A DNA stretch of 64,000 nucleotides from Eutreptiella sp. 'Long Island Sound 2002' (lineage: Eukaryota > Protista > Euglenida): positions 136,462,001 to 136,526,000 of the forward strand of contig OZ038378.1 of NCBI GenBank assembly GCA_964036045.1, written 5' to 3'. The number at the start of each line of letters is the position of its first letter. The first letter of the stretch is position 1. The position numbers and the translations under genes are program-made. The notes under the pieces were generated by a model. That model ran no database searches. It was not told the DNA's origin and saw only the letters and a program-made list of their open reading frames with translations. Positions 6,481-56,300 of this stretch are shown in pieces.

Positions 6481-6488
6481 ATCCGCAC

Positions 6489-12400: not shown

Positions 12401-12575
12401 GAAGCAGTGACCAACTACCACGTTACGCCACCCCCCCCCCCTGGAAGACAGCCCTTCTCAAAACCCTGCAATGCAGCCCCTTAAAATGATCGCAATCAAA
12501 TTCTAAGAACGCGACTTTTCTTATTTTTGGCCGATGATGGTCGTTTTGGTGAACTAGGACCGTTTGAAGCGCTTT
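6489..12575. repeat. Tandem array of about 730-bp units (8 complete plus 1 partial), each with two stem-loops
   Basis: Unit starts (TTGTTCAAATCCCC and variants) at 6489, 7218, 7948, 8680, 9410, 10140, 10870, 11599 and 12329. Confidence 0.97.
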
Positions 12576-34591: not shown

Positions 34592-36475
34592 ATGTCGTGC
34601 TCTGCACTCAAAGGACAACGATTGGAGGTTGTGTTGAGGGGGTTGACACGGTGCGACATTCAGTCGCTTGTGCAGGCAGACGATGATGTCCGCACAGGGC
34701 TCGACTTCATGGTTCTTCATAACGTTGCTACCAAGATTGACATGCCTCGCGGACTTTACGAGCGCCAAGGCGATCGCCGCATTCGCCAGTGGAATGCCGA
34801 GGCAAAACCCTCGCGTCCCAACGGCTTCTCCTTGTGCCTCGACAAATCCGGTGTTTGTTTTAGCCGTGCTTTTGATGGTGAGCACGTCTTCCGGACGTGC
34901 GCCTCGCGCCTTGTTGAACGTCTTGTTGAGGGTTCGATGTATGTTGAAGTGGGCGGTTCCGTTTCGTCCTTCTGGGAAAAGGCTGAAGTGGACATCATCT
35001 CGGTGGACACAAGTGACCGTTTGATCGGATGGGCGCAAATCAAGGCCAACTACAATCCGTTCAATGTCTTCTCAGGGTGTGCCACAAAAGAGCTCGTGTA
35101 CTCCCCAAACGAATTCGGAGGGGCCCATCTTGCTGGCGTAAAGGTGATCTCATCGGTGTTCTCGGAGATTAGGGTGTACGAGGGATGCCGTGGATGCGAG
35201 GGTCTTGACGATGTTCGCGTCACCAAAGTGTGCAACAATTGTACTGCGGCCACCGGGAAACCGGCCAAATACTTCAGCTTCATGTTGAAAGTGGACATCA
35301 ATGGCCGCATTGAGAAAACCTTGTGGCGTGGCAAATCGGCGTCGCTGTACGTCATGCAGTACTTGGATGCCTGTGAAATGAATGATCCTTTTGCCATCGC
35401 CGATGCCATCGAGCGCGCGTTTCCCCGAGACCACCTCCTGGACCTCATCGTGTGGTACCGGACGCATATTGCGTCAGACGGGGTGGAGTGCCCAGTCAAC
35501 CTCTTGCATGTGGTTCTCAGCCGCCCCGCCAACCATGCCGATTGGCCTGTGCATCAACCGGTGTCTCTTCATGATTCCATGGGCTATGGTGACCTTCCGG
35601 AGGTTGCCTCACTCTCCGAAGCAGGCACCGGGCAAGGTGGGGTGGATGTGGATGGAGTGCTGCACCCGGTGGCGTTGAACGCATACAACCAGAGTTGTGG
35701 TACCAATGCCACTCTCCAAGGGCTCTTTGCTCTGCCGCCCTTGCGCGCTTCTATTTTGCAAACGGAGCGCTCCAATCGTGCCGTATGCCGCGCATTGGTA
35801 CGGTGTGTGGAAGCCTTGCAATCTGGGATTGCGCCGCGCCCGGAGTTCATCCGTGGTCTGCGCTTGCACACCATGCCTCTGCTACGCGCCGGGGAAGAGG
35901 GTTCCAACGTGGTGCACATGTGGAACGCTCTTGCCATGGGTGTGCCACTTGACTCTGTGCGGTTTGCGGTGCACCGCCAATATAGATGCCCTGTTGCCGG
36001 TTGCGAGATGGTCATTGAGGAAATGATGCCCGAAGTGCACCACATGCTTACGCTACCCCACAATATGGCAATTCAACAGGGCTTGGATGCCGCTCCCCAA
36101 GAAGTGCAACAAGTCAATGAGGGTTATCTTGTTCATTGTCCCGACCATTTCGCACAACAAGCAGTGGCATACACCCGCCGCTTCGCCGGACACAGAGATG
36201 GGCTTGTTATTGCGCGTGCGGCAGGTGGCCAGATTGCCATTCCCGCGGAGGTCACCTTTGCGAATAGCCGCTGGTCAGCCCGTAGTGTGGTTGAGCACCG
36301 CCCCAATCACTACGTAGCTTACGTCCGAGTGGACCAGCGGGATGGTGGAGCGCGCTACTTCGTGTGCGATGATGCTTCCATCACAGGCTGTGACAACGCT
36401 ATCCCAGACTGCCGGATGGTGTTGCTCTTCTTGCAACGCGAAGGTGGCCCGGAAAACGAGGTTCCGCGGCCCTAA
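34592..36475 (+). CDS. RPA70-like OB-fold (with C4 zinc ribbon) fused to a ubiquitin-specific protease (peptidase C19) domain
   Basis: YEGCRGC...CNNC...YFSFMLKVDING matches the RPA70 DBD-C pattern. USP Cys box NQSCGTNATLQGLFALPPLR (Cys 35696), His box NHYVAYVR (His 36308) and YFVCDD (Asp 36368). The frame extends 5' to a CACTAG acceptor at 34558, so upstream exons are likely. Confidence 0.8.
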   Translation: MSCSALKGQRLEVVLRGLTRCDIQSLVQADDDVRTGLDFMVLHNVATKIDMPRGLYERQGDRRIRQWNAEAKPSRPNGFSLCLDKSGVCFSRAFDGEHVFRTCASRLVERLVEGSMYVEVGGSVSSFWEKAEVDIISVDTSDRLIGWAQIKANYNPFNVFSGCATKELVYSPNEFGGAHLAGVKVISSVFSEIRVYEGCRGCEGLDDVRVTKVCNNCTAATGKPAKYFSFMLKVDINGRIEKTLWRGKSASLYVMQYLDACEMNDPFAIADAIERAFPRDHLLDLIVWYRTHIASDGVECPVNLLHVVLSRPANHADWPVHQPVSLHDSMGYGDLPEVASLSEAGTGQGGVDVDGVLHPVALNAYNQSCGTNATLQGLFALPPLRASILQTERSNRAVCRALVRCVEALQSGIAPRPEFIRGLRLHTMPLLRAGEEGSNVVHMWNALAMGVPLDSVRFAVHRQYRCPVAGCEMVIEEMMPEVHHMLTLPHNMAIQQGLDAAPQEVQQVNEGYLVHCPDHFAQQAVAYTRRFAGHRDGLVIARAAGGQIAIPAEVTFANSRWSARSVVEHRPNHYVAYVRVDQRDGGARYFVCDDASITGCDNAIPDCRMVLLFLQREGGPENEVPRP

Positions 36476-39190: not shown

Positions 39191-39928
39191 GTTACGGCTG
39201 CCTGTATTCCGCGGTGTAGAGATGACATTGTGTGCGACATCGGCAATCCCCTATGCAAGGTTCATCCGCTGCATGTGAATAGTACTTTTGGCGTGACTAT
39301 TACACGTGGGTTTGCATCGATGGGCAAGATAATCCAAAAACATAAAAATACTGCCGCCCAAAAAATGCCCAAACGGCCGACCAAACCTATGCATGTCAGA
39401 GGTTCATCTACACACCAAATGATCCCACTGGCACACAAGGGTGGGCACTTGTCCAGTTGAACATTCGTTGTACGACAATTTGCTTTGGGTGACCTCAATC
39501 CCATACAGTGGGACGTCATGTCTTTCTTGGTGCTACACGCAGGTGCAGCTAGTGTGCACTGAAAAAAGCCTCATGCACAAGCACTAGGGCACACATCACG
39601 ATATACAGTCGTCGGGTGGGGCGTTGGAGCGTACGTATTTATTTATTTACACCCCAATGCCCACGTTGAGAACGAAGGGCACCAAAGAGGCATGGAACAG
39701 TCCGACAACTCGCGTGGTAGTTGGGCACGTGCTTTGTGATCGCTTGCTAAAACGACCCATCGTGTTTTCTGCAAGGCACCAGCTGTGCTACCAGGAAAAA
39801 AGTGCCAGAGTCAGAAGAGAGACATATGTTGCCATTTAGTGTAGTCACATCATGCCGGCCCCAAAGAGAGATCAACAATGTGATGCAAAGTGCCTCCACA
39901 TGCCTCTTAGACGTTTTGTATAAGCCAT

Positions 39929-40690: not shown

Positions 40691-41554
40691 GCTTTTTCAT
40701 TGTTGCGGCCACATCCCCTACCACCGGAGCCGTTCATGTGTGCTACTGGTTGGGTGTTGGTGACCTGCCTCCTCGTACCGCCTGTATGAGTCAGGCCCCT
40801 TGTGCATTGCAATATTGCCTCCATGTGAACTATATAACGGTCCGTAGGGTGGCCTTGTTGCATCCACTCGCCAAAGTGTTTCGTGACCAAGCACTTTTCC
40901 TTTTTTTTTTCCCCGTCCACCTTTCTTTCCGCACTTTAGAGAAGTGGCGCAGTGCATGTACATGCATCCATCCGCATGTTGCACATGTGTATATACAGAA
41001 ATGACTCTTTGTCATTGAAGCGTGGCATGATGATGTGCCGTGCGCGTGCCATCCCTCACCGGTGCGTCTTCCCACAACATATTGCCAAATCCACACTCTA
41101 TGCACTGCGAGTCTGCTGGTGGGTATTTTTTTGCTGCATGGTGTATTGGTGCTAATGTCGTTGCCAGGAATCTGCTTCCTTCCGCTTTGCTTGGGGCGCC
41201 ATAGAAATACACCCACAAGGTAATCCTCTTGACTTTACTGGAGTTGGTGGTGCAACAAATTACTTGGATCCCTCTGAGTCCAGGCGAGCTGCCCCGGAAT
41301 CCCAATGTCTATCCTCCCGCATTGCGTGGTGAGCTTCAAACGTCTCATGCTTCGTGCATCATGGGCGCTCATCCTAGGTGATCAGTGCTTTGTAGCGTGT
41401 CAAGCATTGCACGCACACCTCTTCTGGGCCGTTCCTGTCGTGAAATTGCTGGTGTAGGTGTTTGCTAGAGCCACTTCTGCAGCAACCCCCCACCCCCCAC
41501 ATTGTGAGTTGGGCGAATAGCAATGTTGCAATCTTGACCCAACCACATCAACTG

Positions 41555-42310
41555 GCACACAAGATATGCAACATTCAAAGACTAAAAACCCCCAAATTGC
41601 AACCACCGACAAGCATTTGGAAGGTACGGGCATAGCAAGCAATGCAATTGTGCCAAGGGAGGTTGTCGTGCTGATAGGGCTATTGCACCTGGGCGCCGTT
41701 GGTGGCTTCGCACAGGTGATGCGCGTCAACTGGCACCAAAGATATGCAACATAGAACCCCCAAAGTGCAACCACCGACAAACCAATAGTTTGCCACATTA
41801 GCAAGCATTCGGACGGTACAAGCATAACAAGCAATCCAATGATATGCAACATTGAAAGACTAAAAAGCGCCAAAGTGCAACCACCGACAAGCATTTGGAA
41901 GGTACAGGCATAACAAGCAATGCAGGGAGGTTGTCGTGCCGACAGGGCTATTGCACCTGGGCGTCATCGGTGGCTTCGCACAGGTGATGGGCGTCAACTG
42001 GCACCAAAGATATGCAACATTGAAAGACTAAAAAAAAACCCCAAAGTGCAACCACCGACAAACGAATAGCTTGCCACACCAACAAGCATTTGGAAGGTAC
42101 GGGCATAACAAGCAATGCAATTGTGCCAAGGGAGGTTGTCGTGCCGACAGGTCTATTGCACCTAGGCGCCGTTGGTGGCTTCGCACAGGTGATGGGCGTC
42201 AACTGGCACCAAAGATATGCAACATTAAAAGACTAAAAAACCCCCAAAGTGCAACCACCGACATACCAATAGTTTGCCACATGAACACGCATTTCGACGG
42301 TACGGGCATA
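41555..42310. repeat. Interleaved 100-250-bp direct repeats upstream of the large ORF
   Basis: AAGATATGCAACA...GCAACCACCGACAA...GAAGGTAC recurs 4-5 times. Confidence 0.8.
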
Positions 42311-43139
42311 ACAAGCAATCCAATTGTGTCATGGGTCTGTGATGGGTTTGATAGACTTGATTCACGCCAGAGTGCCGAACGAGGCGTCCTAGCAAGCTCC
42401 CCAAGCAAAAAGAGGGCCACTTTGCGTATGCATACGAGAAAACGCTTTTGCTCTACCATTGTTGCTACCATTCTTGGCCAATGTTGACATGCCACATTGC
42501 CATGGGCAAGCACATCTACACCGGCCACAGGCACAATGGGGTCAGCAAGTGCGGGTGCCCTGACTTCATTGATACTTGTTGCCTCACTTTTGTTTTGATA
42601 GCCTGTGATGGATTGCATGCCATGTTCATGTTATTTTTACGGAGCCCTTCATGGGATGTGCTGCATCGTTCGATACAAACAATTGCACATTGTGCGCCTT
42701 AGAGGGTGGTTGCACCATTTGCGGTCTTGAAACACATTTGTTGCACCACCTACGGACGACGATGCCAAACTTTCCCTGCACCCCATGGACAGCCCCCTGC
42801 CCTGTGTTAGCATTCACGGCATGGACGATTTTCTATTCCAACCATTTGAATCTTTCACGTCATGTAGGTGGTGTTGATGCCATGCACACGCAATCCGCAA
42901 CAACATGCCGCATTCAGCAATGGCTTCTTGCCATTCCAAGCCCGATATCAGTGAGTGGCCATGACCTGGGGCCACCCGGCGGTGGTGTATTGGTGACACC
43001 CTTGCCCGCAAATGTTTCAGTGTCAGGAGCCCAATGTTGCAATCTTGTTGCACCAACGGAGCAGTAGCTAGGGTGTTGCGGAAACACAAGAAAACACCTA
43101 TCGGCGCTACAAGTTGACATCACATCGTCGTCCTCGTGT

Positions 43140-46100
43140 ATGAGCATCCCTCATTTGGAGTCTGGTACGTTGTCGTCTGCTCCACCGACCAACTCTAGCA
43201 TCCCAGATTTGGAGTTTGGTAGCCAGTCATCCACGGTCTCGGATTCCGAAAGTTATCTATTGCCCGCCGAAGGGCCATTTCAGCTACACGGAAGCGCCAT
43301 GGCCGAGGGAGGTAGCACAAGGGCAGTGCCCAGTGGCCGTCGGGTGTTTGACCCATCAACATCCTCGATAGTGCGGTGCGTGGATGTGAGCACCATATTG
43401 TCCCACGAGTGTGTGTCCAATGCGGAGATGTGCTCGTGGGATGGTGACGATCAGTCCGACAAGGTGTATTCTATCGACAATGCTTCACTTGTAGTTCGCT
43501 TGCAGCACCCAGTATGGCCGCCCCAGCACAAGTATTTTTCTGTGGACACCGTTGGTGTGTGTGGCTTGTCCTCCGTGCTTGGCACGGATGGTGTCTCTCC
43601 ACCCGATCAGCATGGTACCAACGTATGCGTCCACAAGGGTATGACGGAAGAGGCAACCCCAACAACAACCAACTCCAGTGCACCCTCTTTGGACCCTGTA
43701 GGGTCGGAAGCTAGCGCTTTGCCAGAACTCAAGGACTTGAGTGCGACATCCACGCAGACTACTAGAGGCGCAGCAAATCCATCAGACACATGCATCCATC
43801 CGGATACAGATTTCGTCGGGCGACGTTTCAACCGCAGCGCTGGTTCGCCATGTATGTCACCTGCTGCTTCAGAGCGGACGTCTGGCTGCGCATCCGTTCA
43901 TCCGCCACAGGATGATTATCGGGTTGTCTCCACCAACGATATCACAACATCATGTTGTTCTCCCATACACATGGCTTGTTTCATCCTAATGGTGGGAAGT
44001 TTTATTTTACTCCATATTGCGCAACGCCGCGGTTGTAGCGACATGGTTTTTGTCTTTCATAGTGCATTGTGTTTTTTACTTCGTTTTGGAACGCCCAACC
44101 ACTGGGGCAATCTATTCAGTTTCGCAAGGCGTTCCTGGGGAACGGGATGCAAGCACCTATGTGGGACCGGCGGTCGGTGCCTCTTGGCAATCATCTTTGC
44201 ACTTTCCCCGTTTTGCCCCCCGGATGCCAATGACTCCTTGGCTGACAAAGCCATTGTGCTAGTTATGCTTTTCCTTCTTTTGCGCCAACTTTGTGCCATG
44301 ATGTGGAGCATGAAAGCTCGCCGACGGCACACACCGTGGCCTTCGCGTGCGTTGGACCGCACACGGCATCCACGGCAAACAGCACGCCACAAGCGCAAGC
44401 GCGCGCGCCGCAAATATCGCCACTTAATGCGCGCACGCCTCCGGGCGCAGACCAATGCGTGGCACTATGTTTGGGTGCTGAATGAATTGTTGCATTGTAG
44501 CATGGAATTGGTGTTTGTTTCCGCCACAGTGTATCACAACTCCATAGTGAGCTGCGCATTGCATATTGGTATAGTTGTTGTTTTTTTTCCGGGGCTTTGG
44601 GCAGCAAGCCTTGCCTTACTGAGACCATGTTGCTCAGGTCTGCTACAGGTTTTCATTTTGCAGTTTTCATCATTCCCACTGTACGATGCCGCCATCACCG
44701 CAGTCTGCATGGGCAATTGGGGTACGTTGGTGCACTGCGCACTGTACTGCAATGTTGCAGGGCCACTTTTATGTCGATGGGTGGTGTACGAACAACTGCG
44801 ACGTGCACTGCCACATGTTCTCTGCGCCACCCTGCAGCGCGCAAGGTGCCTTTGGCGGCCACTGATGCGCATGTGCATGCCATGTACCATAAAAGAAGCA
44901 TTCTTGCGGCTAGCTGTGCCGCCCGTTGAGCTTCTTTTCTTACACACCTTTACTATTGCGATGCCCTTTCTACCGTCAGTTCCGTTGTGGGCTAGTGTTT
45001 GCGTATGCCCGATGCTTTGCTTCATCGGGCTGTTTTTCACTGAGGATGCACGAGCTACCATGGGCTTCTTGATACACATCTTTCGGCGGTGTTTGTCCTT
45101 CCTTGTGGTGCACCACATGCACAACGCGCTTGCCATGGGGGCATGCATCGTTGGTACTACCTTAGAGTTGCTTCTGTGTGGGTCGCTGCTTGACGTTTTC
45201 AACGACCCTTGGGCAGCCGCGTTACAATTGATGTGCAACGCTACAATGCATGCACTAGTCGGCAACGGGCCCTGCATAACCACCCTTTTGTGTTGCGGGT
45301 GTGGCCGTGCAGACGAGCAGTTGTTCCACGTTCCAAACCCTATTAGGCGTGCCGCCACCGTTTCGTGTGCCCTTATCCGTACGGACGCCAGTGGATGGTT
45401 CGAGGCACCTAGCCTAGCGGAGGAGCACTTCATTTGGGCCCGTGACAATGGATTCCCACTGTACTGTGCGCCTTGTCGAAATTACCGTGATCACCAATGG
45501 GATTCCGCGCAAAGTGGCGGACAACAGACCAAATACGCTGCATCGTGCATGAGCATTGTGGGTTACCTCCTCGGGACTGAGTTTGCGGACGAGGTGTGGC
45601 CTATGCTTCCCCCCAAGGTACAACATCAATGGCGTGGACTCATTCTACGTTGCGCACAGCATCCGTCGCGAGTGCAAGATGCCCATGAGTACAAGAGGTT
45701 GCCATTGAGTATGGCGCACTTCCACGAGGTGGCCAATTTCCCCCGTGACACCAAATGTGCTGTCTGTAGGTGGGGTCTTCACGCCGAGGAGGTCAGTTTC
45801 TTGCCATATTTCCGATTCCATGATTGCCAATGGTTACAAGGGTCGTCCGTTGCCGAGGCAACGTTGCGATGCACCTTCCAACACCCAGATGGCACATTCT
45901 GCCATAACCGCCGCCCACAAACCAGGCCACTTTGCATTGACCATCAGCCAGTGGAGGAAGGCAGATGTGGCAAGCCGACAGGCCGCGGTACACGGTGCCG
46001 CAACTTGCATGGTGCATGCGCCATACACCGGCCACATGAGCCTCAACCTGGATCACGTGAGCCTGGACCCGTGCCCGTACCTCGTCCCTCTTGCGGTCTT

Positions 46101-49100
46101 CGCTCTGCGCAACCAACACTCGACGATCGCGGTGTTGAAGAGGTGTCGTGTAGCCAAAGGGAACGATGTACGGGGCATACTAGGAAGGGACGCTGCCGCT
46201 CGTATGCTCTCCCGGGTACTACTCGATGTGCCTACCATCCCATTGGAAGTGAATGCCCGCTTCCTGCATACCTCCAACTTTCACCGCACATCAGCAACCA
46301 CACCGCTCCGGTCGTTGTGGCCCCCACATGTACCGCTGTTGAAGACGACACCATGCATGTATCGCCCATTTCGGCTGCCCGGGAAGAAGTTGTGGTGGAA
46401 GAGGGTGCGCATGTATCATCTGATGACGAAATTGTTGAGATTGAAGTCGTGGTGGAAGAGGGTGCGCATGTATCATCTGATGACGAAATTGTTGAGATTG
46501 CCCCTCGCATGGAAGGCGGGGGACCATTGTCCAACGCATCGCTGTCAGACGTGGAATTGGACGGAGACCAACGGTGTGCAACCATGTCTTCTTCGTCTCG
46601 CTCTAGTGGTAGGTTGTCTCCTCAAAATGATGAAGACCATGACTTGGAGAGTGGAGGACCCTTATCCATTGCGTCTATGAGTGAAGTGGACTCGGAGAGC
46701 ACGCAACGGTCATCAATCATGTCAATTCCGGAGCCTAGTAGTTGCAACATGCGCGATGATGTCTGTGATACTTCCATTGTTCATCGCGGTGAGGCATCGT
46801 CCTGCATGCCGGATGGTGATGGTGATGCTGAGGGTAGTGCTAGCACGTATGGAAGTGAGGGGTGGTGCGATGATAACGATCCAAACTTTGATGGCTCCCA
46901 GTGCTGTGTTTCTCAAGGCGGTCCCGAGGTCGGGTGCGATGCATCCCAGCCACCGCCTAGACTACGTAGACGCCACCCAAAACAAACCAGGATGGCATGG
47001 CTTGCTCCGTGTTGGGATGTGGCGGCACAGCACCCTTTGCTACCAGAAGGGCACGCTGGCATCTGCACTCGGGCTTTGTTTCATCATGTCCACGGGCTTG
47101 CTTTCGCAGTATGCGCATATTGCGAAAAACGGTGGTGGGCCAAGCACTTGTTCAGTGTAGTGTGGCCAAGTAACCAACTACGGGATGATGCGTTGAACCC
47201 CGTGGATCCTCCAACGTTTCATGCCCCCGTACACCAAAATCTGGGCCATTTGGCGCCAGTCCGCATCAACGACGTTGCAGTGTCGGGTGTTCGCTTACGT
47301 CGAGACAAACGCACGGGGCGGCCTACCTCTGCACAATACCAACTATTAGGCATTTGTGGGGACGGCCGCGGCATCTCCACACAATTCATCTCTTTCGGCC
47401 ACAAGGCGTTGAGGTACGTCCTTGCGCCACAGTCCATATTATGGAGGTGGTACCGCATCCTACACCGCCATCGACCGGATCTGGAGTGCGTGTGGAGCCA
47501 CCTTTGGGGCCCACCTGGATGCAGCAATCGCGAAGACTTGGACCGTGACGTTCCCAACGTCACATTTGGGACGTGCCCCAGAGAGGCTACGTGGGTTAAG
47601 CAAGTGAAGCGGCGTGCCCCTCTGTCACAAGAGGAAGCCTCCGCGCGACGCGTCATCTTGCGCAAAGGGGCACCCGGATGGGTGATGCCACGCGTGTTGC
47701 CGCACACCCCGCAAAACGCAATTACTGCGGCTCTTCACAGCCTTCTCGTGGTACGGTCTATTCGTGCCACACTTTTGCAACCTACGGATGCCGCCACGGA
47801 CGTGAACCACCCCATTTATGACACTTTGGCTATGATCTTTCGCGGCTTGTTTCGTGGAGACATCCCAGAGCGGCAGCTCTTTAAGGAGTTGAGAGAGTTG
47901 TTAACCATGCCGCATGGCCTGTTGCGGGAGCGCCAGTTGACGCGAGGCCAGTCACGATGTGCTTACACCGTCCTCGATACCCTATTGACCCGCATCTTCG
48001 TCCGCTCCAGTGTTGGAAACGACTTGCCGACAATGTTTCGACCGACATGGCCACGCCGCACCGGGGTTGTTCTCCCACCGGCTTTTGCCCCTTGTGCCCT
48101 CCATTGTACCCTCACGGAACCTCCACCCGTTGATTTTTTGCAGCACCTCAACAACCTAGTTGCGGATTGGCCGATAAATGAGCGCCTCGGTATATGTGGT
48201 CCGGTGCTTTTGGTCTACGTAGACTGTACGGCGACAACATCTGATGTCGACATTCCCTTCGTACCCGACTACCTGCCCGGCTTCGTTGGGCGTTATGTGT
48301 TGCGGGCTCTATTGTGCTGCAAATCTGATACTTGGGTGGCGGTGGTTCCTGGTAGGGCTGTAAATGCCAACCGGGCGTTGTTTGAATGTGGGCAATACAC
48401 CATAAAGCGCCATCAAACAATGCGTTGGTCCTTAAAAGCTGGTACGACCGCCATGCTGGTGTATGAGAGGCCCGTTCTGCGCCAAGGTATTGACGTGGAT
48501 ACCCAGGATGTTGAGGGTTGGGTTCGTGCCACGGAGTCCGCTGCACAGACTGCCCGGCCACCAGCACAAGAAGATGCCAGCGACTCGGGCTCTTCGTCCT
48601 CGAGCGCGCCAAGCGATGGTTTACCTGAGCCGTTGCCTGTACAAGCGGATGTCTTGGAGAATGTCCTGGAGAGACTTAATGGTCTTGCACAAGACATAGG
48701 AGATGAAGATTTGCGTTGGGCAGAACAACAATTTTTGGCAAGCGTGGGTGGGGAGGCGGATGCTTTTGCCGATGACAGTATCGATGAGGCCCTTGAGGGC
48801 ACCGGCACGTACGTCAAGGATGCCATGGAATACTTGGATGATAACCCATCAAATTCTGCAGGTGTCCACGTCTTGTTGTCCACCCTAGCAGAGTTGACGG
48901 CCCAGCGCGCCAAGCCGGCTCAATGGGTGCGCAATTTTGCCCAAAGCGTGACGAGCCGCCTGCCTAATCTTCCCAACATTTATGAGTACCTCGAAGCCTA
49001 CTTGTTTCCGTCACACTTCCCGGTGCGAGACCCTCAAACCGGACATTTTGCAGGAAACATGCCATTGCGCATGTATTCGGCAAGCACGCTGGCAGACGGT

Positions 49101-52100
49101 CTTCAAGGCTTCGTCAATCCTGAACGCCATGTGCAGGAGGTCCTGAATGATCCCCATAGTACCCGCGCACACGATGTTACATGGATATCGTACGCCTTCA
49201 ACGTCCTTCTCAGCCGCCTTCTGGAACGCGGGCCGAGTGTCAGCATGGTCAAGCGCGGCCTACAGGCCGCACTCCGTGATTATGGAAGCCAACAAGAATA
49301 TAGTGAACGGTTTGGTGACACGCCTTTACCTGGCCTGTTGTATGACAAGGCAGATGCAGACCGTCATGTTGCCCTACTATGTGCAGCACGGAAGAAACTT
49401 GGTGACATGACGTACTTTGGAACAGAGACGTGCGACATGTCTCGCTTTCCTGGCGTGGCCCCGCTTTGGAAGAGAATCGTGGATCAAGGGTTGGACCCGC
49501 AGTATTTTGCTGTTGATCTTCAGCGCGCATGGTACCGATCGTCAAATTTGCTCAGACGCCACCTGATGGAGGACCCCGCCAAACCTTTGGGGAACATCAC
49601 TCACGTCTTCATCCATTGTGAATGGCAGACCGACAAGCCGAACTTGCATCATTTGCATTGGGGTGTGTGGACGGATGATCCCATACATCATGTGAATCCC
49701 GATGTGCGCCATGCCGCCATTCAAAGAGCCTTGGCTAGGCTATCTGCATCAGTGCCACATGCTTTTGACTGGCTAGGCGACGCCAGCGAAATAGCATATT
49801 GGGAGGCCCGGGCCGCCCTAGTGCAACCACATAAACATGGGGACAAGTGCAAGGTTCCCGTCCGCGATCCAACTCAGGTCGTCTTTCAATGCAAGGCAGG
49901 TATGCCAAAGCCCCTCCACAGCGATGTGGGTTTCACACCCCTTGAAGTCAAAATTCCAGATTCTTTGCGTGATCTATTGGTGGAGGAGGGTGTCGCATTT
50001 GAGGACACTGAGACGCCCGGGGTCGTGCGCCTTCACGAGGACTTGCAAGGAGGCATCTGGGAGCCCCCACGGTTGAAGAATGATGGCCTTATCAGCCAAT
50101 TTTGCCCGAGGGTGTTCGTGGCCACGAATGGCTGCCACTCCAATTGGCAGCTGGTCTATGGCAGCCGCTTCCTCCTGGCGTACTTAATTAAGTACCTTAG
50201 CAGCGAGGAGGAGCGTTCCGTGGTGCGGCTAACCCAACAAGGCCCACAAATTGTGAAGGCTACTGAGCATGATGAACACAAGCGCAAGCGGACAACGGGG
50301 CTACGCCTCAAGAGGAAATGCCACGGCCGCACCATTGGTGTGCCGGAGATGGTTTTCTATTGCCTCGGGTATTCTGCCGTGTACTGCACCTTCTCCTCCC
50401 GCCACGTCAACACGGGCACCCCGGAAGGTCGCTTCCGTGTGTTGCGCATGAAGTGGCGGCCTCAGCCACAAGAGAGCCCCATCTTCGGCCCAGCTCCTAC
50501 AGGAGGTCGCGGATGTCCTGACGACTCACGTTGTGGACGGCTAAACGGCGAACCAATGTTTCCAGACCGTGAGCCCACAACCGATCAGCGGCAATCGTAC
50601 ACGACTTGGGACATTGATCGCTATCATCCAGACGCGGTGCTACTGTATTGTCTTCGGCCCCCAGAAACGTACCCCCTGGAATTACGCGATTGGGCCGAGT
50701 TTGTTGTTACTGACATTCGTAACCGCAATCTTCGCAAGCTGTCATGGGACAAACGTCGGCAACGTGTTCTAGACTGGAAGACTCACGGGTTCTACGATTT
50801 GCGCTACAATCGCGTATATTTGCATTGGGAAATTCTTAGGCACCCTCACCTGTGGCGCACCGTCTTCCGCCGCTTGAATGACCTCCCCGCAGGACAGGCG
50901 TTGGCACACGCCTTGGATTACCCCAGCGACCGGGAGCCATGGATGTCGGTGGTCGTGAAGTGGGACATCCGAGTGCTCATCTTTGTGGAGCCACGTTTCC
51001 GACCTGGCTTTTGCGTGGATTGGTTGTGCCAGCGCATCTTGCGACTATCCGGGCCATTCGGAAATGAGGTGGCCAATAGAGACAGCTTCTTGGCGAGTAT
51101 GGGTTATGACTCCCTTCATGAGGCCCTCACATCATTGTTCGTCAATCTCTCCCTTGGAGAGTGGATCTTGGAGGAGGCATCCGGTTGGCCCATTGGCTTC
51201 AAAACTGTTTGGCGCTTGGTTATCCGTATTTGGGAGCAACAACGGAGCGGCACCACATACGAGGTGTCCATCCCCATGACGGACCGCGAGCTGGAGGCCG
51301 AGCATTGCCAAAAGTACACCGCCCTGTTGAACACAATCCAGCTTCGCCATTGCAACCGCATGTTGAAGGTCCCACCATGGAACCAGCATCCCGAACAAAC
51401 AGATGCAAGCTGGGCAGAGCAACAACGAAGTGCAAACTTCGTGAAGGATGATGTTCGTTTGATCATTCAAAGCCTGCAAGACATCAGCCCAGGAGACTGG
51501 GTCACAGACGGCTTGTACTACGCCCGCCCAATCTACATTAGTGGCCCACCTGGCACAGGAAAGTCTTGGGTAGCGCTCCAAGTTCTAAAATGGATTTGGA
51601 GTGCCACAATCCTCGGCCCAGAGCACTGGGAACTAACTGCCGTGGGCGCCATGTTTGCCCAAAATGGTGGCGGGGTTCACCTTCACCGCCTTTGCTTGTT
51701 TCGCCCCGGTAAGTCCAACCTTTGGACAACCCCTCAAGGTTTGGCGGCGACGGCCCTTAAACGGTTGAAGAAACACCCACACCTTGTTCGCCGTTTGCAA
51801 GAGCTCCTCGTGTTGTACATTGACGAGATGGGACAATGCGGGGCACCGTTGCTATTGGCGCTTCACCTGGTATTGTCGAAACTTCGGGGCACTGATTTGC
51901 CTTTCGGCGGTGTGTTTGTGTTTGCGGCAGGGGACCATTACCAAACCGAGCCTGTGGATATGGCCCCACCTTACACTTCGTGGTTCATGAAGTGCCACTT
52001 TCGCGTCATCACATTAAAGGAGCTGTTCCGCTCCCGCAACGATCAAACTTTGCAGACAATCATCAACTTGGCCAGGGTTCCCCAGCTGATGCCAGCTAGC

Positions 52101-53306
52101 CGTGCCTACATCATGCAGGCAATTCAACAACATTGCCGCCATGTTGCGGTAGACACAGCACATGCCCAGTGGTTGCGCTTGCACGTGCGCCACATTGTGC
52201 CAGCTGTACCAGACGGTGCCACATGGTTGTTGGCCAAGAAGGTAGCCGTCGAGAAGGCCCGCCGTGCGGCGTATGATGCGGCAACCACCCTCAAGGAGTG
52301 TTTCAACAGTCAGGATTTCATACAAAAAAACTCCGAATGGAGCCCTCTCCAGGATAAAGCCTATCGTGACATATTAGACCGCGAATCCACCTTGCTTCGG
52401 CATTGTTTGATCTTCGTTGCTGCCCGTGTGACCGTTGTGCAAAATACCACCACCGATGGGCAAGAGGTGTTGAACGGAGCTCACGGGACGGTAGTTGCGT
52501 TCTGTGATACCCACGTCCGCGTTGCCTTTGATGATGGGCGTACTCTTCGGGTGGGTCGCGAGAGTTCTATCGATATCAGCTACCAAGGTGTCCCCTTGCG
52601 GCGACAACAATTCCCCCTCGAGTTGGCGGTGGCCACGACCATCCATGACATCCAGGGGGCCACAATTGCTATTTTGGCCACATACCTAGACGACAAACCG
52701 GACCACCTCCTATGGTCTCGAACCATGCTCTTCACCTTGTTGACCCGTGCTGAGACCCTAAGTGGTATTTACATTGTGGGTTACGATGAAGGGGTTCTTC
52801 GTGGCTTGCTGCAACATCGCACCAGTTGGCACGCCGAAGTGGACGAGTGGATCCAGCAGCGTGACGTGTTTGCCCATCTCCATGAGAATACCGCCGCCAC
52901 CGTAGATGAGCCCTTGGGCGATTTGGCCTTCCACCAAGCTGAGGGTGCAATTTTCTATCCGCAGGGCACCAACGTGGCGTACCACATCGAGTCCGTTGGC
53001 ACAGGCGAGATTTACCCCGGGTCGACGAACTACATGGCGCGCCGCATTCGACAACACAATGGCCAGCTCTCACCGCCTACTCTTCAAACAAGGCATCGCC
53101 GCGATTGGCGTTTCGTGCATGTCATTCACGGCTTCCCCCCTGGCGGGCCCGGTAAGCTGTTGGCACGGTGGTTCGAGGCAGAGCTGCAACAACGGCCATG
53201 GCGTGGCGCGGACCGATTGGAGCGGGAGTTGCTGGCTCGAACATTGGCCGCGGAGTGGCGCCGTGTTGGCCGTGCAAACCTGATAGTGGACGTTGTCCCA
53301 GAGTAG
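43140..53306 (+). CDS. Helitron-like Rep/helicase polyprotein (3388 aa) with a C-terminal SLX1-like GIY-YIG endonuclease
   Basis: HUH Rep motifs LGDMTYFGT, EWQTDKPNLHHLHW and YLIKY; PIF1 motifs GPPGTGKS, LYIDEM, FGGVFVFAAGDHYQTEPV, RQQFPLELAVATTIHDIQG and LLTRA; GIY-YIG AYHI...IYPGST...ARRIRQHNG...WRFVHVIHGF...WFE. Confidence 0.92.
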   Translation: MSIPHLESGTLSSAPPTNSSIPDLEFGSQSSTVSDSESYLLPAEGPFQLHGSAMAEGGSTRAVPSGRRVFDPSTSSIVRCVDVSTILSHECVSNAEMCSWDGDDQSDKVYSIDNASLVVRLQHPVWPPQHKYFSVDTVGVCGLSSVLGTDGVSPPDQHGTNVCVHKGMTEEATPTTTNSSAPSLDPVGSEASALPELKDLSATSTQTTRGAANPSDTCIHPDTDFVGRRFNRSAGSPCMSPAASERTSGCASVHPPQDDYRVVSTNDITTSCCSPIHMACFILMVGSFILLHIAQRRGCSDMVFVFHSALCFLLRFGTPNHWGNLFSFARRSWGTGCKHLCGTGGRCLLAIIFALSPFCPPDANDSLADKAIVLVMLFLLLRQLCAMMWSMKARRRHTPWPSRALDRTRHPRQTARHKRKRARRKYRHLMRARLRAQTNAWHYVWVLNELLHCSMELVFVSATVYHNSIVSCALHIGIVVVFFPGLWAASLALLRPCCSGLLQVFILQFSSFPLYDAAITAVCMGNWGTLVHCALYCNVAGPLLCRWVVYEQLRRALPHVLCATLQRARCLWRPLMRMCMPCTIKEAFLRLAVPPVELLFLHTFTIAMPFLPSVPLWASVCVCPMLCFIGLFFTEDARATMGFLIHIFRRCLSFLVVHHMHNALAMGACIVGTTLELLLCGSLLDVFNDPWAAALQLMCNATMHALVGNGPCITTLLCCGCGRADEQLFHVPNPIRRAATVSCALIRTDASGWFEAPSLAEEHFIWARDNGFPLYCAPCRNYRDHQWDSAQSGGQQTKYAASCMSIVGYLLGTEFADEVWPMLPPKVQHQWRGLILRCAQHPSRVQDAHEYKRLPLSMAHFHEVANFPRDTKCAVCRWGLHAEEVSFLPYFRFHDCQWLQGSSVAEATLRCTFQHPDGTFCHNRRPQTRPLCIDHQPVEEGRCGKPTGRGTRCRNLHGACAIHRPHEPQPGSREPGPVPVPRPSCGLRSAQPTLDDRGVEEVSCSQRERCTGHTRKGRCRSYALPGTTRCAYHPIGSECPLPAYLQLSPHISNHTAPVVVAPTCTAVEDDTMHVSPISAAREEVVVEEGAHVSSDDEIVEIEVVVEEGAHVSSDDEIVEIAPRMEGGGPLSNASLSDVELDGDQRCATMSSSSRSSGRLSPQNDEDHDLESGGPLSIASMSEVDSESTQRSSIMSIPEPSSCNMRDDVCDTSIVHRGEASSCMPDGDGDAEGSASTYGSEGWCDDNDPNFDGSQCCVSQGGPEVGCDASQPPPRLRRRHPKQTRMAWLAPCWDVAAQHPLLPEGHAGICTRALFHHVHGLAFAVCAYCEKRWWAKHLFSVVWPSNQLRDDALNPVDPPTFHAPVHQNLGHLAPVRINDVAVSGVRLRRDKRTGRPTSAQYQLLGICGDGRGISTQFISFGHKALRYVLAPQSILWRWYRILHRHRPDLECVWSHLWGPPGCSNREDLDRDVPNVTFGTCPREATWVKQVKRRAPLSQEEASARRVILRKGAPGWVMPRVLPHTPQNAITAALHSLLVVRSIRATLLQPTDAATDVNHPIYDTLAMIFRGLFRGDIPERQLFKELRELLTMPHGLLRERQLTRGQSRCAYTVLDTLLTRIFVRSSVGNDLPTMFRPTWPRRTGVVLPPAFAPCALHCTLTEPPPVDFLQHLNNLVADWPINERLGICGPVLLVYVDCTATTSDVDIPFVPDYLPGFVGRYVLRALLCCKSDTWVAVVPGRAVNANRALFECGQYTIKRHQTMRWSLKAGTTAMLVYERPVLRQGIDVDTQDVEGWVRATESAAQTARPPAQEDASDSGSSSSSAPSDGLPEPLPVQADVLENVLERLNGLAQDIGDEDLRWAEQQFLASVGGEADAFADDSIDEALEGTGTYVKDAMEYLDDNPSNSAGVHVLLSTLAELTAQRAKPAQWVRNFAQSVTSRLPNLPNIYEYLEAYLFPSHFPVRDPQTGHFAGNMPLRMYSASTLADGLQGFVNPERHVQEVLNDPHSTRAHDVTWISYAFNVLLSRLLERGPSVSMVKRGLQAALRDYGSQQEYSERFGDTPLPGLLYDKADADRHVALLCAARKKLGDMTYFGTETCDMSRFPGVAPLWKRIVDQGLDPQYFAVDLQRAWYRSSNLLRRHLMEDPAKPLGNITHVFIHCEWQTDKPNLHHLHWGVWTDDPIHHVNPDVRHAAIQRALARLSASVPHAFDWLGDASEIAYWEARAALVQPHKHGDKCKVPVRDPTQVVFQCKAGMPKPLHSDVGFTPLEVKIPDSLRDLLVEEGVAFEDTETPGVVRLHEDLQGGIWEPPRLKNDGLISQFCPRVFVATNGCHSNWQLVYGSRFLLAYLIKYLSSEEERSVVRLTQQGPQIVKATEHDEHKRKRTTGLRLKRKCHGRTIGVPEMVFYCLGYSAVYCTFSSRHVNTGTPEGRFRVLRMKWRPQPQESPIFGPAPTGGRGCPDDSRCGRLNGEPMFPDREPTTDQRQSYTTWDIDRYHPDAVLLYCLRPPETYPLELRDWAEFVVTDIRNRNLRKLSWDKRRQRVLDWKTHGFYDLRYNRVYLHWEILRHPHLWRTVFRRLNDLPAGQALAHALDYPSDREPWMSVVVKWDIRVLIFVEPRFRPGFCVDWLCQRILRLSGPFGNEVANRDSFLASMGYDSLHEALTSLFVNLSLGEWILEEASGWPIGFKTVWRLVIRIWEQQRSGTTYEVSIPMTDRELEAEHCQKYTALLNTIQLRHCNRMLKVPPWNQHPEQTDASWAEQQRSANFVKDDVRLIIQSLQDISPGDWVTDGLYYARPIYISGPPGTGKSWVALQVLKWIWSATILGPEHWELTAVGAMFAQNGGGVHLHRLCLFRPGKSNLWTTPQGLAATALKRLKKHPHLVRRLQELLVLYIDEMGQCGAPLLLALHLVLSKLRGTDLPFGGVFVFAAGDHYQTEPVDMAPPYTSWFMKCHFRVITLKELFRSRNDQTLQTIINLARVPQLMPASRAYIMQAIQQHCRHVAVDTAHAQWLRLHVRHIVPAVPDGATWLLAKKVAVEKARRAAYDAATTLKECFNSQDFIQKNSEWSPLQDKAYRDILDRESTLLRHCLIFVAARVTVVQNTTTDGQEVLNGAHGTVVAFCDTHVRVAFDDGRTLRVGRESSIDISYQGVPLRRQQFPLELAVATTIHDIQGATIAILATYLDDKPDHLLWSRTMLFTLLTRAETLSGIYIVGYDEGVLRGLLQHRTSWHAEVDEWIQQRDVFAHLHENTAATVDEPLGDLAFHQAEGAIFYPQGTNVAYHIESVGTGEIYPGSTNYMARRIRQHNGQLSPPTLQTRHRRDWRFVHVIHGFPPGGPGKLLARWFEAELQQRPWRGADRLERELLARTLAAEWRRVGRANLIVDVVPE
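45870..46238 (+). other. Three CCCH-type zinc fingers within the large ORF
   Basis: RCTFQHPDGTFCHN...CIDH, RCGKPTGRGTRCRN...CAIH and RCTGHTRKGRCRS...CAYH. Confidence 0.7.
47695..48470 (+). other. Degenerate USP-like (pseudo-deubiquitinase) domain within the large ORF
   Basis: LPHTPQNAITAALHSLLVVRSIRATLL resembles the USP Cys box without the Cys. GQSRCAYTVLDTLL resembles the QQDA box. YVLRALLCCKSDTWVAVV resembles the His box without the His. Confidence 0.5.
48980..50420 (+). other. HUH Y2 Rep (rolling-circle initiator) domain, Helitron2/Helentron-like
   Basis: YLFPSHFP; motif 1 near 49398; HLH at 49650-49658; QPHKHGDKC...CKAGMPKP; YLIKY at 50181-50195; RTIGVPEMVFYCLG. Confidence 0.88.
51520..52790 (+). 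other. SF1B PIF1-family helicase domain
   Basis: Walker A at 51543-51566, Walker B DE at 51822, and motifs III, V and VI recognisable. Confidence 0.93.
52971..53200 (+). other. SLX1-type GIY-YIG endonuclease domain
   Basis: Tyr 52980, Tyr 53013, RR-x-x-QHNG at 53040 and FE at 53172-53177 follow the SLX1 pattern YLL...YVG.T...RRxxQHNG...W.mv..vhGFp...FE. Confidence 0.85.
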
Positions 53307-56300
53307 GTTCTGGACATCCCATTTCTCTGTTGCGTTTAATGATGTGCGTCCGCAACCCTCCAACCGGGGCACAAGTGTTCCGTCACTTTACCCCACTGAG
53401 GGGTGCCTCGCAAGGTACACCCCAAGGACCTACCAACATTAGATCATGCATCGGCCGCCCTTTGCAGAGCGCCATTCCGTTGAGGGCTCCTACCCCCATT
53501 AGCCAGCTCCCTCTCAAGCCAAACCCGGGCCGACCTGTGTTACCCTTCTTCTTGTGTGTATCAATTGATCCTACCCTACATGATGCAATCTTACTGCCAC
53601 CGCTACCGCCCAACCCTCTGTCCAATTTGCCTACCCATACCTGTTGTGCGGATGGGTGCTCTTAACCCCCCAATCTCTATCCCGGCACAAGGAGTGCAAT
53701 GCCACACGTACCCCCCCACCCTGCCTCCAATCTGCAAGCCATCCATCTGCTTGGGGCTCTTGTAGCCCGTTCGCATTGCTGCTGTCATTGGTCCTCAGGT
53801 GGTTGGCTGATTGTCCTCCCTTTGGGAGCTTGAACCAACCACGTTTGCCAGCCCCCTTTCAAGACACGTCAGGCTGCTGTGCATTGCCCTAATGATTACC
53901 CTGTGATGCATTCTTGGTGTTCTTTGGAAAGAGAAACCTGGCCCCTCCCCTGCAAAGTCTTCTCCTGTGACATCTTGCCACGTTTCGTCTCACCATTCCA
54001 TGTCCCACCACCGCGGCCTGCCCTGCAACAAATAGTGTCTCAATCATGTCAAGGTGGTTGCCACAATAACCGCCCTTCGGGGGCATGAAGTGGATTGGCT
54101 TTTGCGTGGTGTATACCCGGTGGGCATGCTGTCACAACCCATTGCAAGCAAGCCCGCAGCATTTCCTAAGAGCTAGCCTCCACCCTCCCTCTATTCCGTC
54201 TTCCTGGTTAGGGTTAGGGTTGAGAGCTGTGCTCCAACTGCCAGTGCATTGTTGTTTATTGTGCGTTACATGCAGCGGGCCAATATTACACCAACCGTCA
54301 TCGTGTCATGTTTTGCACACCCCCCTCCCCCTCATGTAGGGCAACGATCATCGGTTCTTTGCATGACAATACATGCAGGTTGCACGCAAATTGCCGCATG
54401 GCCGCGGGAGGACAGAATTATGGCCTGTGCAAGGACACACTTAATTCCCTTCCACCTGTTCCATCCTTCTTTGTGCACCCCCCCTCCCCCCCCCTGCGCA
54501 AGTACCGCCTTGTCTAAGTACCAGGACCCGGTCTGACTGTCACTTTTACCGATTTTTCTAACCTCGGCTTTTAGGTTACAAAGTAGGCAAACCGTGATTG
54601 TGTGCCGATTGTGTAGGGAAAGAGGGGCTGTTCCATGCTTGTTAGGAGTCCTCCTGCTTGTAACAACATTCTGCTTGGTACTGCACCCCACTGCACCCCA
54701 CTGCCCTTTGTTTTGGTGTGATTTTCAGCCATGACTAATGTCTATACCCTTGGCTTGGCTGTCACGTAGATCCGGTCCAGTGGTGAGCATGCGCCTGCCA
54801 CTATCATTGGTCGTTGTAATGGGGAAGATTCCACAACCGAGGAATTGCAACTTATGAGCGCCCATACGCCATACGCCAGCCCCACCAAAACCGCCCTGAT
54901 GCAACTATTGTGCTTAGGGTGAGGGATGGGCAGGTTTTCGGGACATGCATTCTTTGGTACTCTGTGTTGCGCGGTTGCACCGCCTTGTCTAAGCGCCGGG
55001 ACCCGGTCTGACTGTCAGTTTCCTGACCTGGCTGGTGCTTGCGCAAGGAGAGGGGGTTACCCAGTTACGCTGGCGGTGAGGTTCTGTTTTAGTGCCGCTT
55101 CATGCGCTCTTGTTCCGGCCACTGTTTTGGGTGCTGGTCTGATATAGTGCAGGTTGCTTACATTTTTCTGAACATGCGCACTCCAGCCCAGTTTGCAGCA
55201 ATTTTGTTGCTTGCTGATCATTCGTCCGTGTGTTCGGCTGCAAAACATACACCCCCGCTAGTCACATTCTTATCTCCTCGATGCAAGGGCAAATGATACA
55301 TACAAACGCATGCGTACAGCACATCACAGCATGCCACAGTAGTACAGTAGTACAGTGCAGTACAGAGCATGCTACATCATGACACTGCAAGGTGCCACCC
55401 CACAGCACCCCACCATTCCCCCACCTACCCTGCCTACCCTCGTTGTTCCCCCACCCACCGCCCCCATGGTTGGAGTGCCCCAACGTATCCCACCTACCAC
55501 ATCTCTCCCCAACCCACCTCAGTCTACTCAACTCAAACTCAAGGCAACCCAACCCAAGCCACCCCCAAGCCACCTCATGTTGTGAGTGAACGCAACGTGT
55601 GAGTGAACCCCAGTTTGAGCTTGACAGTGTCCAGATTCATGGCTGCACGTGGATGTTCAGCCAGATGGCGCATGTGTGACCACCTCTATGACGTGTGGTC
55701 ATGGCCCATCAAATGCATTTCGTTTTGTTATGCAGAACCTTGACCATTCATGTTGGCACTATTGAACACTTAACACAGAGGAGGCGTACCAAACCATCAC
55801 CCCTCGGTTGTCCAATTAGCATTGGGTGAAAAAGGCAAACCAACCCTTTGTTGGCTACTTCTCTGATCATTACCTTCCCCCATTGCATCCCCGACTACTA
55901 ATGTAGACGGGGTTTGCGCAAGCGCAATGTGAGGTTAGTGGCCAAACCCAATCAGCGGTGGTTTTTGTCATGGTACGTGCGGAACTTCAGTTCTGTTCCT
56001 TCTCAATGTGAAAACCTCATTCTTGCACTTTGCAAAATATATATTGGACATGGCATGTGATACGTGTTTTGGCCCGGTCACAGTCCGTTGAGACAAGAAG
56101 GTGGGTTTCACGTCAATGCAGTTTGGTTGTCCTCATGACAGCCACCATCTCAAATGGGAAAGATTGCTTTCGTTTTGCGTGTTCCTTTCTGCATGTTGTG
56201 CAATTCAGCTCTTGCCCTTGTGCTTTTGTCGCGGAGCGCTTTTTTCCTCACCGATGTGGGAGCCCCCAAGGTCTTGGGGTTATGTAGCCACCTTGCCCAC

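Follow-up and report, generated by a model that had tools for sequence, protein, structure and literature searches.

What is understood of Helitron transposition comes from Helraiser, a single reconstructed element with an HUH nuclease that cuts only single-stranded DNA; how a duplex target is accessed is an open point. The locus described here raises the question of whether some Helitron-like elements carry a second, dedicated nuclease, and of what such a domain would contribute. It lies in a window of 64,000 nucleotides (nt) of the Eutreptiella contig OZ038378.1 (assembly GCA_964036045.1, positions 136,462,001-136,526,000, forward strand; all coordinates below are window positions), a repeat-rich stretch of eukaryote-type DNA with one exceptionally long open reading frame (ORF). 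We are highly confident that this ORF is the transposase gene of an autonomous Helitron-like rolling-circle element. The clade to which it belongs is deep and widespread and combines a long N-terminal extension, an HUH Rep with two tyrosines (Y2), a PIF1-type helicase and an SLX1-like GIY-YIG domain.

A continuous Rep-helicase-nuclease frame

The ORF and its principal domains, with residues numbered in amino acids (aa), are:

43140..53306, forward strand: transposase ORF with N-terminal extension, Rep, PIF1 helicase and GIY-YIG; a single 3388-aa frame with an ATG start
48801..50699, forward strand: Rep region, aa 1888-2520, with motif I, HUH, Y2 and an H/C/C zinc-like insert
51477..52859, forward strand: PIF1-like SF1B helicase, aa 2780-3240, C-terminal to Rep in the same protein
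52917..53303, forward strand: SLX1-like GIY-YIG nuclease, aa 3260-3388, with Y3281, Y3292, G3294, R3302, H3306, N3307 and E3346
42651..43067, forward strand: in-frame upstream ORF of 138 codons ending in TAG; in the second assembly of the locus (L006, below) the frame runs unbroken into the main ORF

An initial reading of the window from sequence only had proposed an uninterrupted 10.2-kb frame with Rep, PIF1 helicase and a C-terminal GIY-YIG, and motifs and profiles now bear this out for all three domains. The frame translates without a stop, an event with a chance of ~1e-57 for 3388 codons at the regional base composition, and the longest open stretch on the opposite strand measures 315 codons. 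Locus L006 of the assembly ERZ25074135 (offset 32650), which encodes the 3551-aa protein P0014, is an independent assembly or haplotype of the window locus with the same continuous fusion: it shows ~10 single-base differences in 22 kb, and P0014 is 99.94% identical to the window ORF at the protein level, with 4 single-nucleotide polymorphisms (SNPs) within the ORF, 2 synonymous and 2 non-synonymous. The TAG at 43065-43067 reads CAG in L006, whose frame starts 489 nt further upstream, at window-equivalent position 42651, and is 163 codons longer at its 5' end. The two assemblies diverge structurally from window position 56262 on.

First homologue searches returned five proteins. One of them, P0001 (2663 aa, Logan run SRR7091318), is 44% identical to the window protein and colinear with it for 1517 aa that start ahead of Rep and include the GIY-YIG domain to its final residue; the other four come from ERZ25074135 contigs of 0.5-2.9 Mb.

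A divergent Helitron-type Rep and a PIF1-type helicase

The Rep region contains motif I as TYFGTETC (T2095), the HUH motif as H2171-L-H2173 within HHLHWGVW (nt 49650-49658) and the Y2 motif as Y2348 and Y2352 within AYLIKY (nt 50181-50195). An alignment of eight family Reps (A1) shows conservation of motif I as TYFGTxTC, of HUH and of FLLAYL(V/I)KYLSSEEER. Across 53 sequences both histidines of HUH and the first tyrosine are invariant and the second tyrosine is at least 90% conserved. The consensus of 20 clade sequences, TYFxTxTCNQ ... GNxPHxHxL ... YLxKYAAGxEER, resembles the classic Helitron Rep motifs.

The assignment to the Helitron type follows from three lines of evidence, namely that relatives match the Pfam Helitron_like_N profile, that profile comparison shows homology to a canonical Helitron and that the predicted structure matches Helraiser. 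First, Helitron_like_N is matched at E <= 1e-3 by 11 of 20 long relatives (best E 7e-8); P0060 and P0068, which also carry GIY-YIG, pass its cutoff (29.3 and 32.7 bits against 28.9), and a copy from the same genome, P0005, together with P0001, matches it below the curated cutoff (E 3e-5 and 8e-4). Second, the canonical comparison uses one reference sequence, the fungal Helitron P0205 (DUF6570 9e-40, Helitron_like_N 2e-39, PIF1 2e-17), obtained by a homologue search with the core alignment that returned 6 proteins. An hhalign comparison of the Rep profile (A5) with P0205 gave a probability of 87% (E 3.9e-6) and spans motif I, HUH and the His/Cys zinc-like insert. Clade members score 33 bits or less with Helitron_like_N, as against 136 bits for P0205. 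Third, an AlphaFold (AF2) model of the window Rep region, built from the 53-sequence alignment (predicted local distance difference test, pLDDT, 76.7; predicted template modeling score, pTM, 0.75), has a single significant match in the PDB, chain 7lcc_A, 'Helitron transposase bound to LTS' (E 2.1e-5, probability 1.00, 523 columns); the Rep nuclease domains of adeno-associated virus and geminiviruses rank next and are not significant. Direct search of PDB sequences with the Rep family profile did not reach 7LCC (Helraiser). Thus, the Rep is homologous to that of Helitrons yet very divergent, at about 12-16% identity, and the HUH Y2 Rep of the initial reading, whose HLH and YLIKY motifs are present, is upheld by the relatives, the profile and the fold.

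The same Rep family profile also aligned weakly (E 2e-4) with linker proteins of the phycobilisome (ApcH of 8imk, LR3), over aa ~2000-2078 (nt ~49137-49373) with the motif KRGLQAAL.DY.S..EY.ERFGD..LPG.; this is probably due to chance and is not taken to point to the host.

Pfam searches with the whole ORF report its C-terminal domains only, as GIY-YIG, PIF1 and AAA_30; with the helicase piece in isolation PIF1 scores 26.2 bits against a cutoff of 25.9, and UvrD_C_2 and Viral_helicase1 match its C-terminal half. Walker A (GPPGTGKS, 2802-2809), Walker B (YIDEMG, D2895-E2896) and GDHYQ (2931-2935) are all present, phmmer against solved structures retrieves PIF1 helicases at E 7e-13 to 4e-10, and hhalign of the core profile (A7) aligns the helicase with that of P0205 at a probability of 98.8%.

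The C-terminal domain is an SLX1-like GIY-YIG nuclease

Pfam PF01541 matches aa 3281-3334, with E 2.8e-5 for the whole protein and E 5.1e-7 for the C-terminal piece (30.3 bits, cutoff 22.6), so that the domain passes a GIY-YIG profile, one of the points on which the first proposal could have failed. That proposal had further singled out ARRIRQHNG (aa 3300-3308) and RWFEAE (aa 3343-3348) as holding the equivalents of the catalytic arginine and glutamate of SLX1. Profile alignments place RRIRQHN and FEAE against RRLRQHNG and QFEHAW of SLX1, with R3302 and E3346 at its catalytic positions, and these residues are widely retained among 38 clade members along with the rest of the putative active site:

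Y3281: conserved in 37 of 38
Y3292: conserved in 34 of 38
G3294: conserved in 36 of 38
R3302: conserved in 34 of 38
H3306: conserved in 36 of 38
N3307: conserved in 36 of 38
E3346: conserved in 32 of 38

The 32-sequence clade consensus (A6) reads GxVYxLxS...YxGxTxNxxxRLxQHNxGxGxxxTxxxxxRPWxxxAxxxGF...FExxW, and SLX1 and At-HIGLE share with the window domain the signature Y..G.T....R(L/I)RQHN...(R)PW....GF....FE..W.

Sequence and structure searches agree on the nearest relatives. Whereas phmmer with the window sequence retrieves SLX1 chains among solved structures at E 2e-5 to 0.2, the C-terminal family alignment (A2) retrieves them at E 1.3e-10 to 2.3e-8, with I-TevI, phage EndoII and bacterial UPF0213 at E 0.3-0.65. 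The 11 best PDB matches of the AlphaFold model of the domain (pLDDT 90.3) are all Slx1 or At-HIGLE (E 6e-5 to 1.5e-3, template modeling score up to 0.65), as against E 0.5 for UPF0213 and 2.3 for UvrC. The SLX1-type nuclease of the earlier proposal is hence borne out in profile and fold. The likeness does not extend to a full SLX1 architecture: SLX1 has a RING/PHD finger and an obligate SLX4 partner and cleaves flaps, forks and Holliday junctions, whereas the window domain is the C-terminal part of a 3388-aa transposase and ends the ORF with no RING/PHD-type zinc finger after it, the frame stopping 42 aa past E3346 in what is modeled as two helices and a final strand. As judged from its sequence, the domain is SLX1-like rather than an SLX1, because the RING finger is absent.

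The fusion is ancestral to a clade and maintained by selection

Of 1.84 billion representative proteins searched with a Rep profile, 371 qualified as relatives at E <= 1e-3 and 192 of these at E <= 1e-10; lengths of 1500-3200 aa are common among them. None is named in NCBI or UniRef, and the label of one JGI protein is 'predicted GIY-YIG superfamily endonuclease/DNA replication protein DnaC'. Pfam scans of 20 long relatives found PIF1 in 17, GIY-YIG in 13, Helitron_like_N in the 11 mentioned above, and OTU and UCH in one each, while Exo_endo_phos and DUF6570 were absent at E <= 1e-3 from these 20 and from the window ORF. With local hidden Markov models built from A5 (Rep), the helicase columns of A7 and A6 (GIY-YIG), and restricting the scan to proteins of at least 1200 aa with Rep and a complete helicase, GIY-YIG directly follows the helicase in 50 of 52 proteins. 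The two exceptions are P0089, which ends 7 aa past the helicase, and P0135, which has a 170-aa tail with no detectable GIY-YIG.

A Rep-helicase (RepHel) tree of 44 rows (43 clade members and P0205; quick IQ-TREE, rooted on P0205) places all 43 clade members apart from the canonical Helitron on a long branch. Within it, the window groups with P0001 (support 86), then P0030, with P0036 (100) and then with P0043 (99). Every deep branch holds GIY-positive members and the five tips lacking GIY-YIG are scattered; four of them have tails of 0-38 aa after the helicase match and are read as truncated ORFs, and the fifth is P0135. Pairwise distances of the GIY-YIG domain correlate with those of RepHel (Mantel r 0.68, reached by 0 of 1000 permutations). 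Thus, the clade has had the nuclease since its base, and the domain diverged in step with the Rep-helicase; one ancient fusion kept by selection is the simplest reading.

Ratios of non-synonymous to synonymous substitution rates (dN/dS), computed by region between the window and its 84%-identical subfamily, are 0.04 for Rep, 0.08-0.10 for the helicase and 0.13-0.17 for GIY-YIG: the core, including the nuclease, is under purifying selection. Together with the conserved catalytic residues and the divergence that tracks the Rep-helicase, this argues for an ancestral functional module rather than a captured passenger.

The earlier suggestion of an undescribed Helitron clade therefore holds to the extent of the 50 relatives with the domain and the long branch that separates them from the canonical Helitron, and has to be qualified by one published precedent: HelenSM92, an HLE2 family of Sphagnum magellanicum, is described in a single sentence as having a GIY-YIG besides RepHel, which is called 'captured' (HELIANO, PMC11417382). 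Apart from this line, the sole precedent found, a full-text literature search turned up no published Helitron clade that has a GIY-YIG nuclease fused to its transposase.

Copies, accessory protease and extent of the element

Cluster listings added ~30 further fragments and full-length copies in ERZ25074135, which has at least 8 loci at 38-98% identity. The copies fall into subfamilies of about 88-95%, 66% and 38-48% protein identity. Many are frameshifted, L003 is 5'-truncated and L009 is interrupted by a long terminal repeat (LTR) retrotransposon. This decayed multi-copy pattern is that of a transposon family. The LTR retrotransposon (aspartic protease, reverse transcriptase, RNase H, integrase) occupies L009 1972-6750, upstream of the break in homology to the closest subfamily, subfamily B, at L009 9997.

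A second gene probably belongs to the same element:

34592..36475, forward strand: ORF of 627 aa for a diverged UCH/USP-like cysteine protease, with a weak Pfam UCH match

In its product the Cys box reads NQSCGTNATLQGL and the His box NHYVAYVR...CDD. The diverged copy L005 has a homologue (E 2e-16), itself a UCH match, encoded ~8.3 kb upstream of its RepHel ORF on the same strand, and P0043 combines a clear UCH domain (E 1e-20) with Rep, PIF1 and GIY-YIG in one polypeptide. On these sequence grounds the protease is probably an accessory gene of the element. Because its homologue holds the same position in L005 and UCH is fused in P0043, the window element probably spans at least 34592-53306.

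At the DNA level the window copy aligns with subfamily B as far as the stop codon and no further, and none of the other fetched loci shares the flanks of the window copy. Four contigs carry subfamily B copies that match one another at 97.6-98.3% identity for 17-24 kb, right up to where the fetched DNA ends. A downstream walk in ctg10367 (L011) reached a 730-bp satellite array and no element boundary. On L001, no spliced leader or poly(A) was found.

One clade member, a 1955-aa protein with PIF1 and GIY-YIG (P0142 group), is encoded on intron-free contigs of 30% GC from the assemblies of three marine metagenomes, one of them a TARA Oceans sample. These contigs, L012, L013 and L014, represent the same locus at 99.5-99.9% identity, and no boundary was found. 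The gene is flanked by conserved ORFs of ~518, 540 and 443 aa with no known domains, and it may come from an AT-rich protist or a large DNA virus.

A predicted role for the nuclease and the alternatives

HUH enzymes need single-stranded substrates and cannot cut duplex DNA. In Helraiser only one strand is transposed, via a circular intermediate; the Rep tyrosines nick single-stranded DNA at the ends and the helicase unwinds 5'-3' (PMC6431247). By analogy, the HUH tyrosines of the window protein would cut and rejoin single-stranded DNA at the element ends and the 5'-3' helicase would peel off the transposed strand. The GIY-YIG domain would then supply the duplex- or branch-cutting activity that HUH lacks: its substrate might be the target or the second strand, which it would nick, or else a flap, fork or hairpin arising in strand transfer, which it would trim. 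Such a cut would give Rep single-stranded DNA to act on or leave a 3'-OH to prime synthesis of the second strand. This proposal draws on the substrate limits of HUH, on the AP endonuclease of Helentrons and the GIY-YIG of Penelope-like elements, which hold the same position, and on SLX1 structures solved with flap and branched DNA (as given in the titles of the PDB entries). A duplex- or branch-cutting part in transposition is a tentative suggestion, to which we give somewhat less than an even chance. The broader explanation, a Helitron-like transposase of a clade with a functional nuclease, we regard as fairly probable.

Several points weigh against that explanation. Helitron_like_N (PF14214) does not match the window's own Rep, either in the whole protein or in cut pieces, and the Rep is only ~16% identical to a canonical Helitron Rep (hhalign against P0205). 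SLX1 is normally activated by SLX4 through the RING-side surface, and the region that SLX4 contacts is absent from the window ORF. Because the TAG near its 5' end cuts the longer frame of L006, the window haplotype may not be the fully active form. Helitron-like termini are either 5'-TC...CTRR-3' with a 3' hairpin or short asymmetric terminal inverted repeats, with insertion at AT or TT and no target-site duplication; among the fetched loci no element termini, target-site pattern or empty site was found, the repeat units of subfamily B exceeding 24 kb with their ends not reached.

The alternative that survives best is a homing or retention nuclease, whose cut at the emptied donor site, or at an allele lacking the element, would be repaired by copying the element back in. 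Such a role has been shown for TnpB beside the HUH transposases of IS200/IS605, and some Helitron2 elements carry Fanzor nucleases. Nuclease partners are a recurring theme of HUH transposons (PMC3627910, 10.1101/2023.11.20.567912), and the conservation of the domain fits any functional nuclease role equally. However, TnpB and Fanzor are separate, RNA-guided proteins, whereas here the nuclease is fused to RepHel in the manner of the Helentron AP endonuclease, and no guide or recognition module is evident. Covalent fusion to RepHel suggests action within the transpososome, and we consider homing rather unlikely.

Somewhat less likely still is that the ORF encodes a replication-initiation, helicase and nuclease protein of an integrated virus- or plasmid-like replicon, or is a domesticated host gene. 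The long, nearly identical subfamily B units that lack discernible ends would fit such a replicon, as would the metagenomic clade member on near-identical 30%-GC contigs, which shows no multiple insertion contexts, and one viral protein of BFVD matches the Rep model at E 1.3e-4. On the other hand, Pfam detects no capsid, polymerase or other viral hallmark in any flank, and a search with the close Rep alignment found no relatives in 2.9 million viral contigs and one weak fragment (L010) in JGI metagenomes. The many diverged, frameshifted, truncated and retrotransposon-interrupted copies in one genome, and the Helitron transposase as the best structural match, likewise speak for a transposon.

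Host capture would make the GIY-YIG a fragment of an SLX1/HIGLE-like exon carried as a passenger with no part in transposition. Helitron-like elements often capture host sequence, the Sphagnum domain was interpreted in this way (PMC11417382), and the nearest solved relatives are the cellular SLX1 and HIGLE. Yet 50 of the 52 complete relatives, on every deep branch of the tree, have the domain, always at the same C-terminal position and in the same frame; conservation extends to the Y, Y, G, R, H, N and E of its active site, and both its dN/dS and its codivergence with RepHel are those of a working part; a passenger is improbable, and there was at most one ancient acquisition that later became a fixed functional module. 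Finally, an assembly or annotation artefact joining separate genes, for which nothing speaks beyond the general risk of repeat-rich DNA and which the sequence-only reading had named as a danger to itself, is ruled out with near certainty, as the continuous frame recurs in the independent assembly of the locus with its few SNPs, in diverged copies, in P0001, which comes from an unrelated run, and across dozens of further samples.

Relationship to known systems

The preferred interpretation, a Helitron-like transposase with a fused functional nuclease, has its closest architectural parallel in Helentrons, HLE2 elements with an AP endonuclease C-terminal to the helicase (PMC11417382, PMC6431247). 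Both have an extra endonuclease fused to RepHel in this position, and the OTU cysteine protease of Helentrons has its counterpart in the OTU or UCH of the window clade. They differ in that the Exo_endo_phos AP endonuclease of Helentrons is replaced by the SLX1-like GIY-YIG, in that the clade's Rep is far more diverged from Helitron_like_N, and in that the Helentron/HLE2 marker DUF6570 seen in P0205 is missing from the window ORF and its 20 relatives. DUF6570 upstream of Rep marks HLE2, and UCH and OTU are typical of HLE2 subgroups (HELIANO, PMC11417382); the UCH/OTU domains thus hint at an affinity with HLE2, though the marker is absent. HelenSM92 shares with the window a GIY-YIG in a Helitron-like element, a comparison that extends to its one-sentence description only. 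Canonical Helitrons, represented by Helraiser (7LCC), likewise have an HUH domain with two tyrosines followed by a PIF1-like helicase, and the Rep fold matches 7lcc_A; at ~12% identity, the window protein differs in its much longer N-terminal extension (1887 aa) and in the C-terminal nuclease.

Outside rolling-circle elements, Penelope-like retroelements also join a replicative enzyme to a C-terminal GIY-YIG in the same ORF (PMC6431247). Their core is a reverse transcriptase, as opposed to the HUH Rep and helicase of the window. Pfam found no reverse transcriptase domain anywhere in the window ORF. The Penelope-like nuclease is not known to be of the SLX1 type.

The core machinery is therefore that of known Helitron-like elements; what is new is a different helper nuclease fixed across a clade whose Rep is barely seen by standard profiles. 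The clade, compared in the tree with one canonical reference, may be a subgroup of HLE2 or a third lineage. A bolder and doubtful version would make it a third major lineage of eukaryotic rolling-circle transposons outside HLE1 and HLE2, defined by an ancestral SLX1-like nuclease that cuts duplex or branched DNA, integrating without awaiting single-stranded targets and perhaps sharing a direct ancestor with cellular SLX1/HIGLE. If true, such a lineage would parallel the split between AP-endonuclease and GIY-YIG elements among LINEs and Penelope-like retroelements.

Until now the Helentron AP endonuclease was the sole hint of a dedicated helper nuclease. The independent fixation of a different nuclease, of a structure-specific type, at the same position argues for accessory duplex or branch cutting as a recurrent solution rather than an accident of capture. 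Because the Rep barely registers with Helitron_like_N, current Helitron annotation tools probably under-detect the clade. It also offers a compact, self-contained SLX1-like nuclease that would work without SLX4, and an experimental handle in point mutants at R3302 and E3346 as compared with Y2348 and Y2352.

The N-terminal extension

In the window ORF 1887 aa precede the Rep region, and three blocks stand out:

43950..45203, forward strand: hydrophobic Cys-rich N-terminal region, aa 271-688, with ~6 membrane-helix-like segments
45219..46238, forward strand: Cys/His-rich block, aa 694-1033, with zinc-finger-like CxxC/CxxH repeats
46992..48800, forward strand: pre-Rep block, aa 1285-1887, conserved, with no known domain

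Pfam and NCBIfam searches with cut Rep, pre-Rep and N-terminal pieces of the window ORF gave no matches. The hydrophobic region is common only to the closest subfamily (subfamily B), is missing from more distant relatives and is weakly constrained (dN/dS 0.53 for aa 1-690). The Cys/His-rich block is kept in diverged subfamilies and in P0001, has its Cys/His motifs in the clade consensus and shows a dN/dS of 0.23; that of the pre-Rep block is 0.13. A 57-bp in-frame tandem duplication at 46386-46515 yields a repeated acidic stretch of 19 residues, VVVEEGAHVSSDDEIVEIE.

Repeats and minor features of the window

Rfam gave no matches in the window. A tandem array of ~730-bp units at 6488-12576 is 94% identical to the array that lies ~10 kb downstream of the subfamily-B copy in ctg10367, and 5392-12576 aligns with L011 (reverse complement 10625-17993) at 91-95% identity. 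Its first units, at 5392-6482, are 91-95% identical to a ~714-bp array located 6 kb downstream of the L002 copy (L002 18371-22460), as against only ~70-75% for the main ~730-bp window array. This satellite may be carried or seeded by the elements, or the elements may accumulate beside it.

A 28-bp satellite with the consensus CATCCCGTGTTTAGCCGCTCGTGCGGCA is present in ~353 copies at 18272-28137 and continues in degenerate form to ~29212 (62-63% GC, AT skew ~-0.45). Just before it, a ~560-bp piece at 17617-18175 is 72-77% identical to DNA 0.8-1.5 kb past the ORF stop in all four subfamily-B copies, and may be a fragment of an element's 3' region or a separate small repeat. A telomere-like run, GGTTAGGGTTAGGGTT, lies at 54205-54225, ~0.9 kb downstream of the ORF. 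Arrays of related ~77, 142 and 153 bp repeats at 56355-63626, with the core ...CCCCGATATGGGGACCCCCAAGAC...GTAGCCAC...GCCCACATGTGGGCCAC..., make up most of the last 8 kb, and amid the 77-bp repeats a 220-aa ORF (59183-59845) has a weak match to the GRF zinc finger (E 9e-4).

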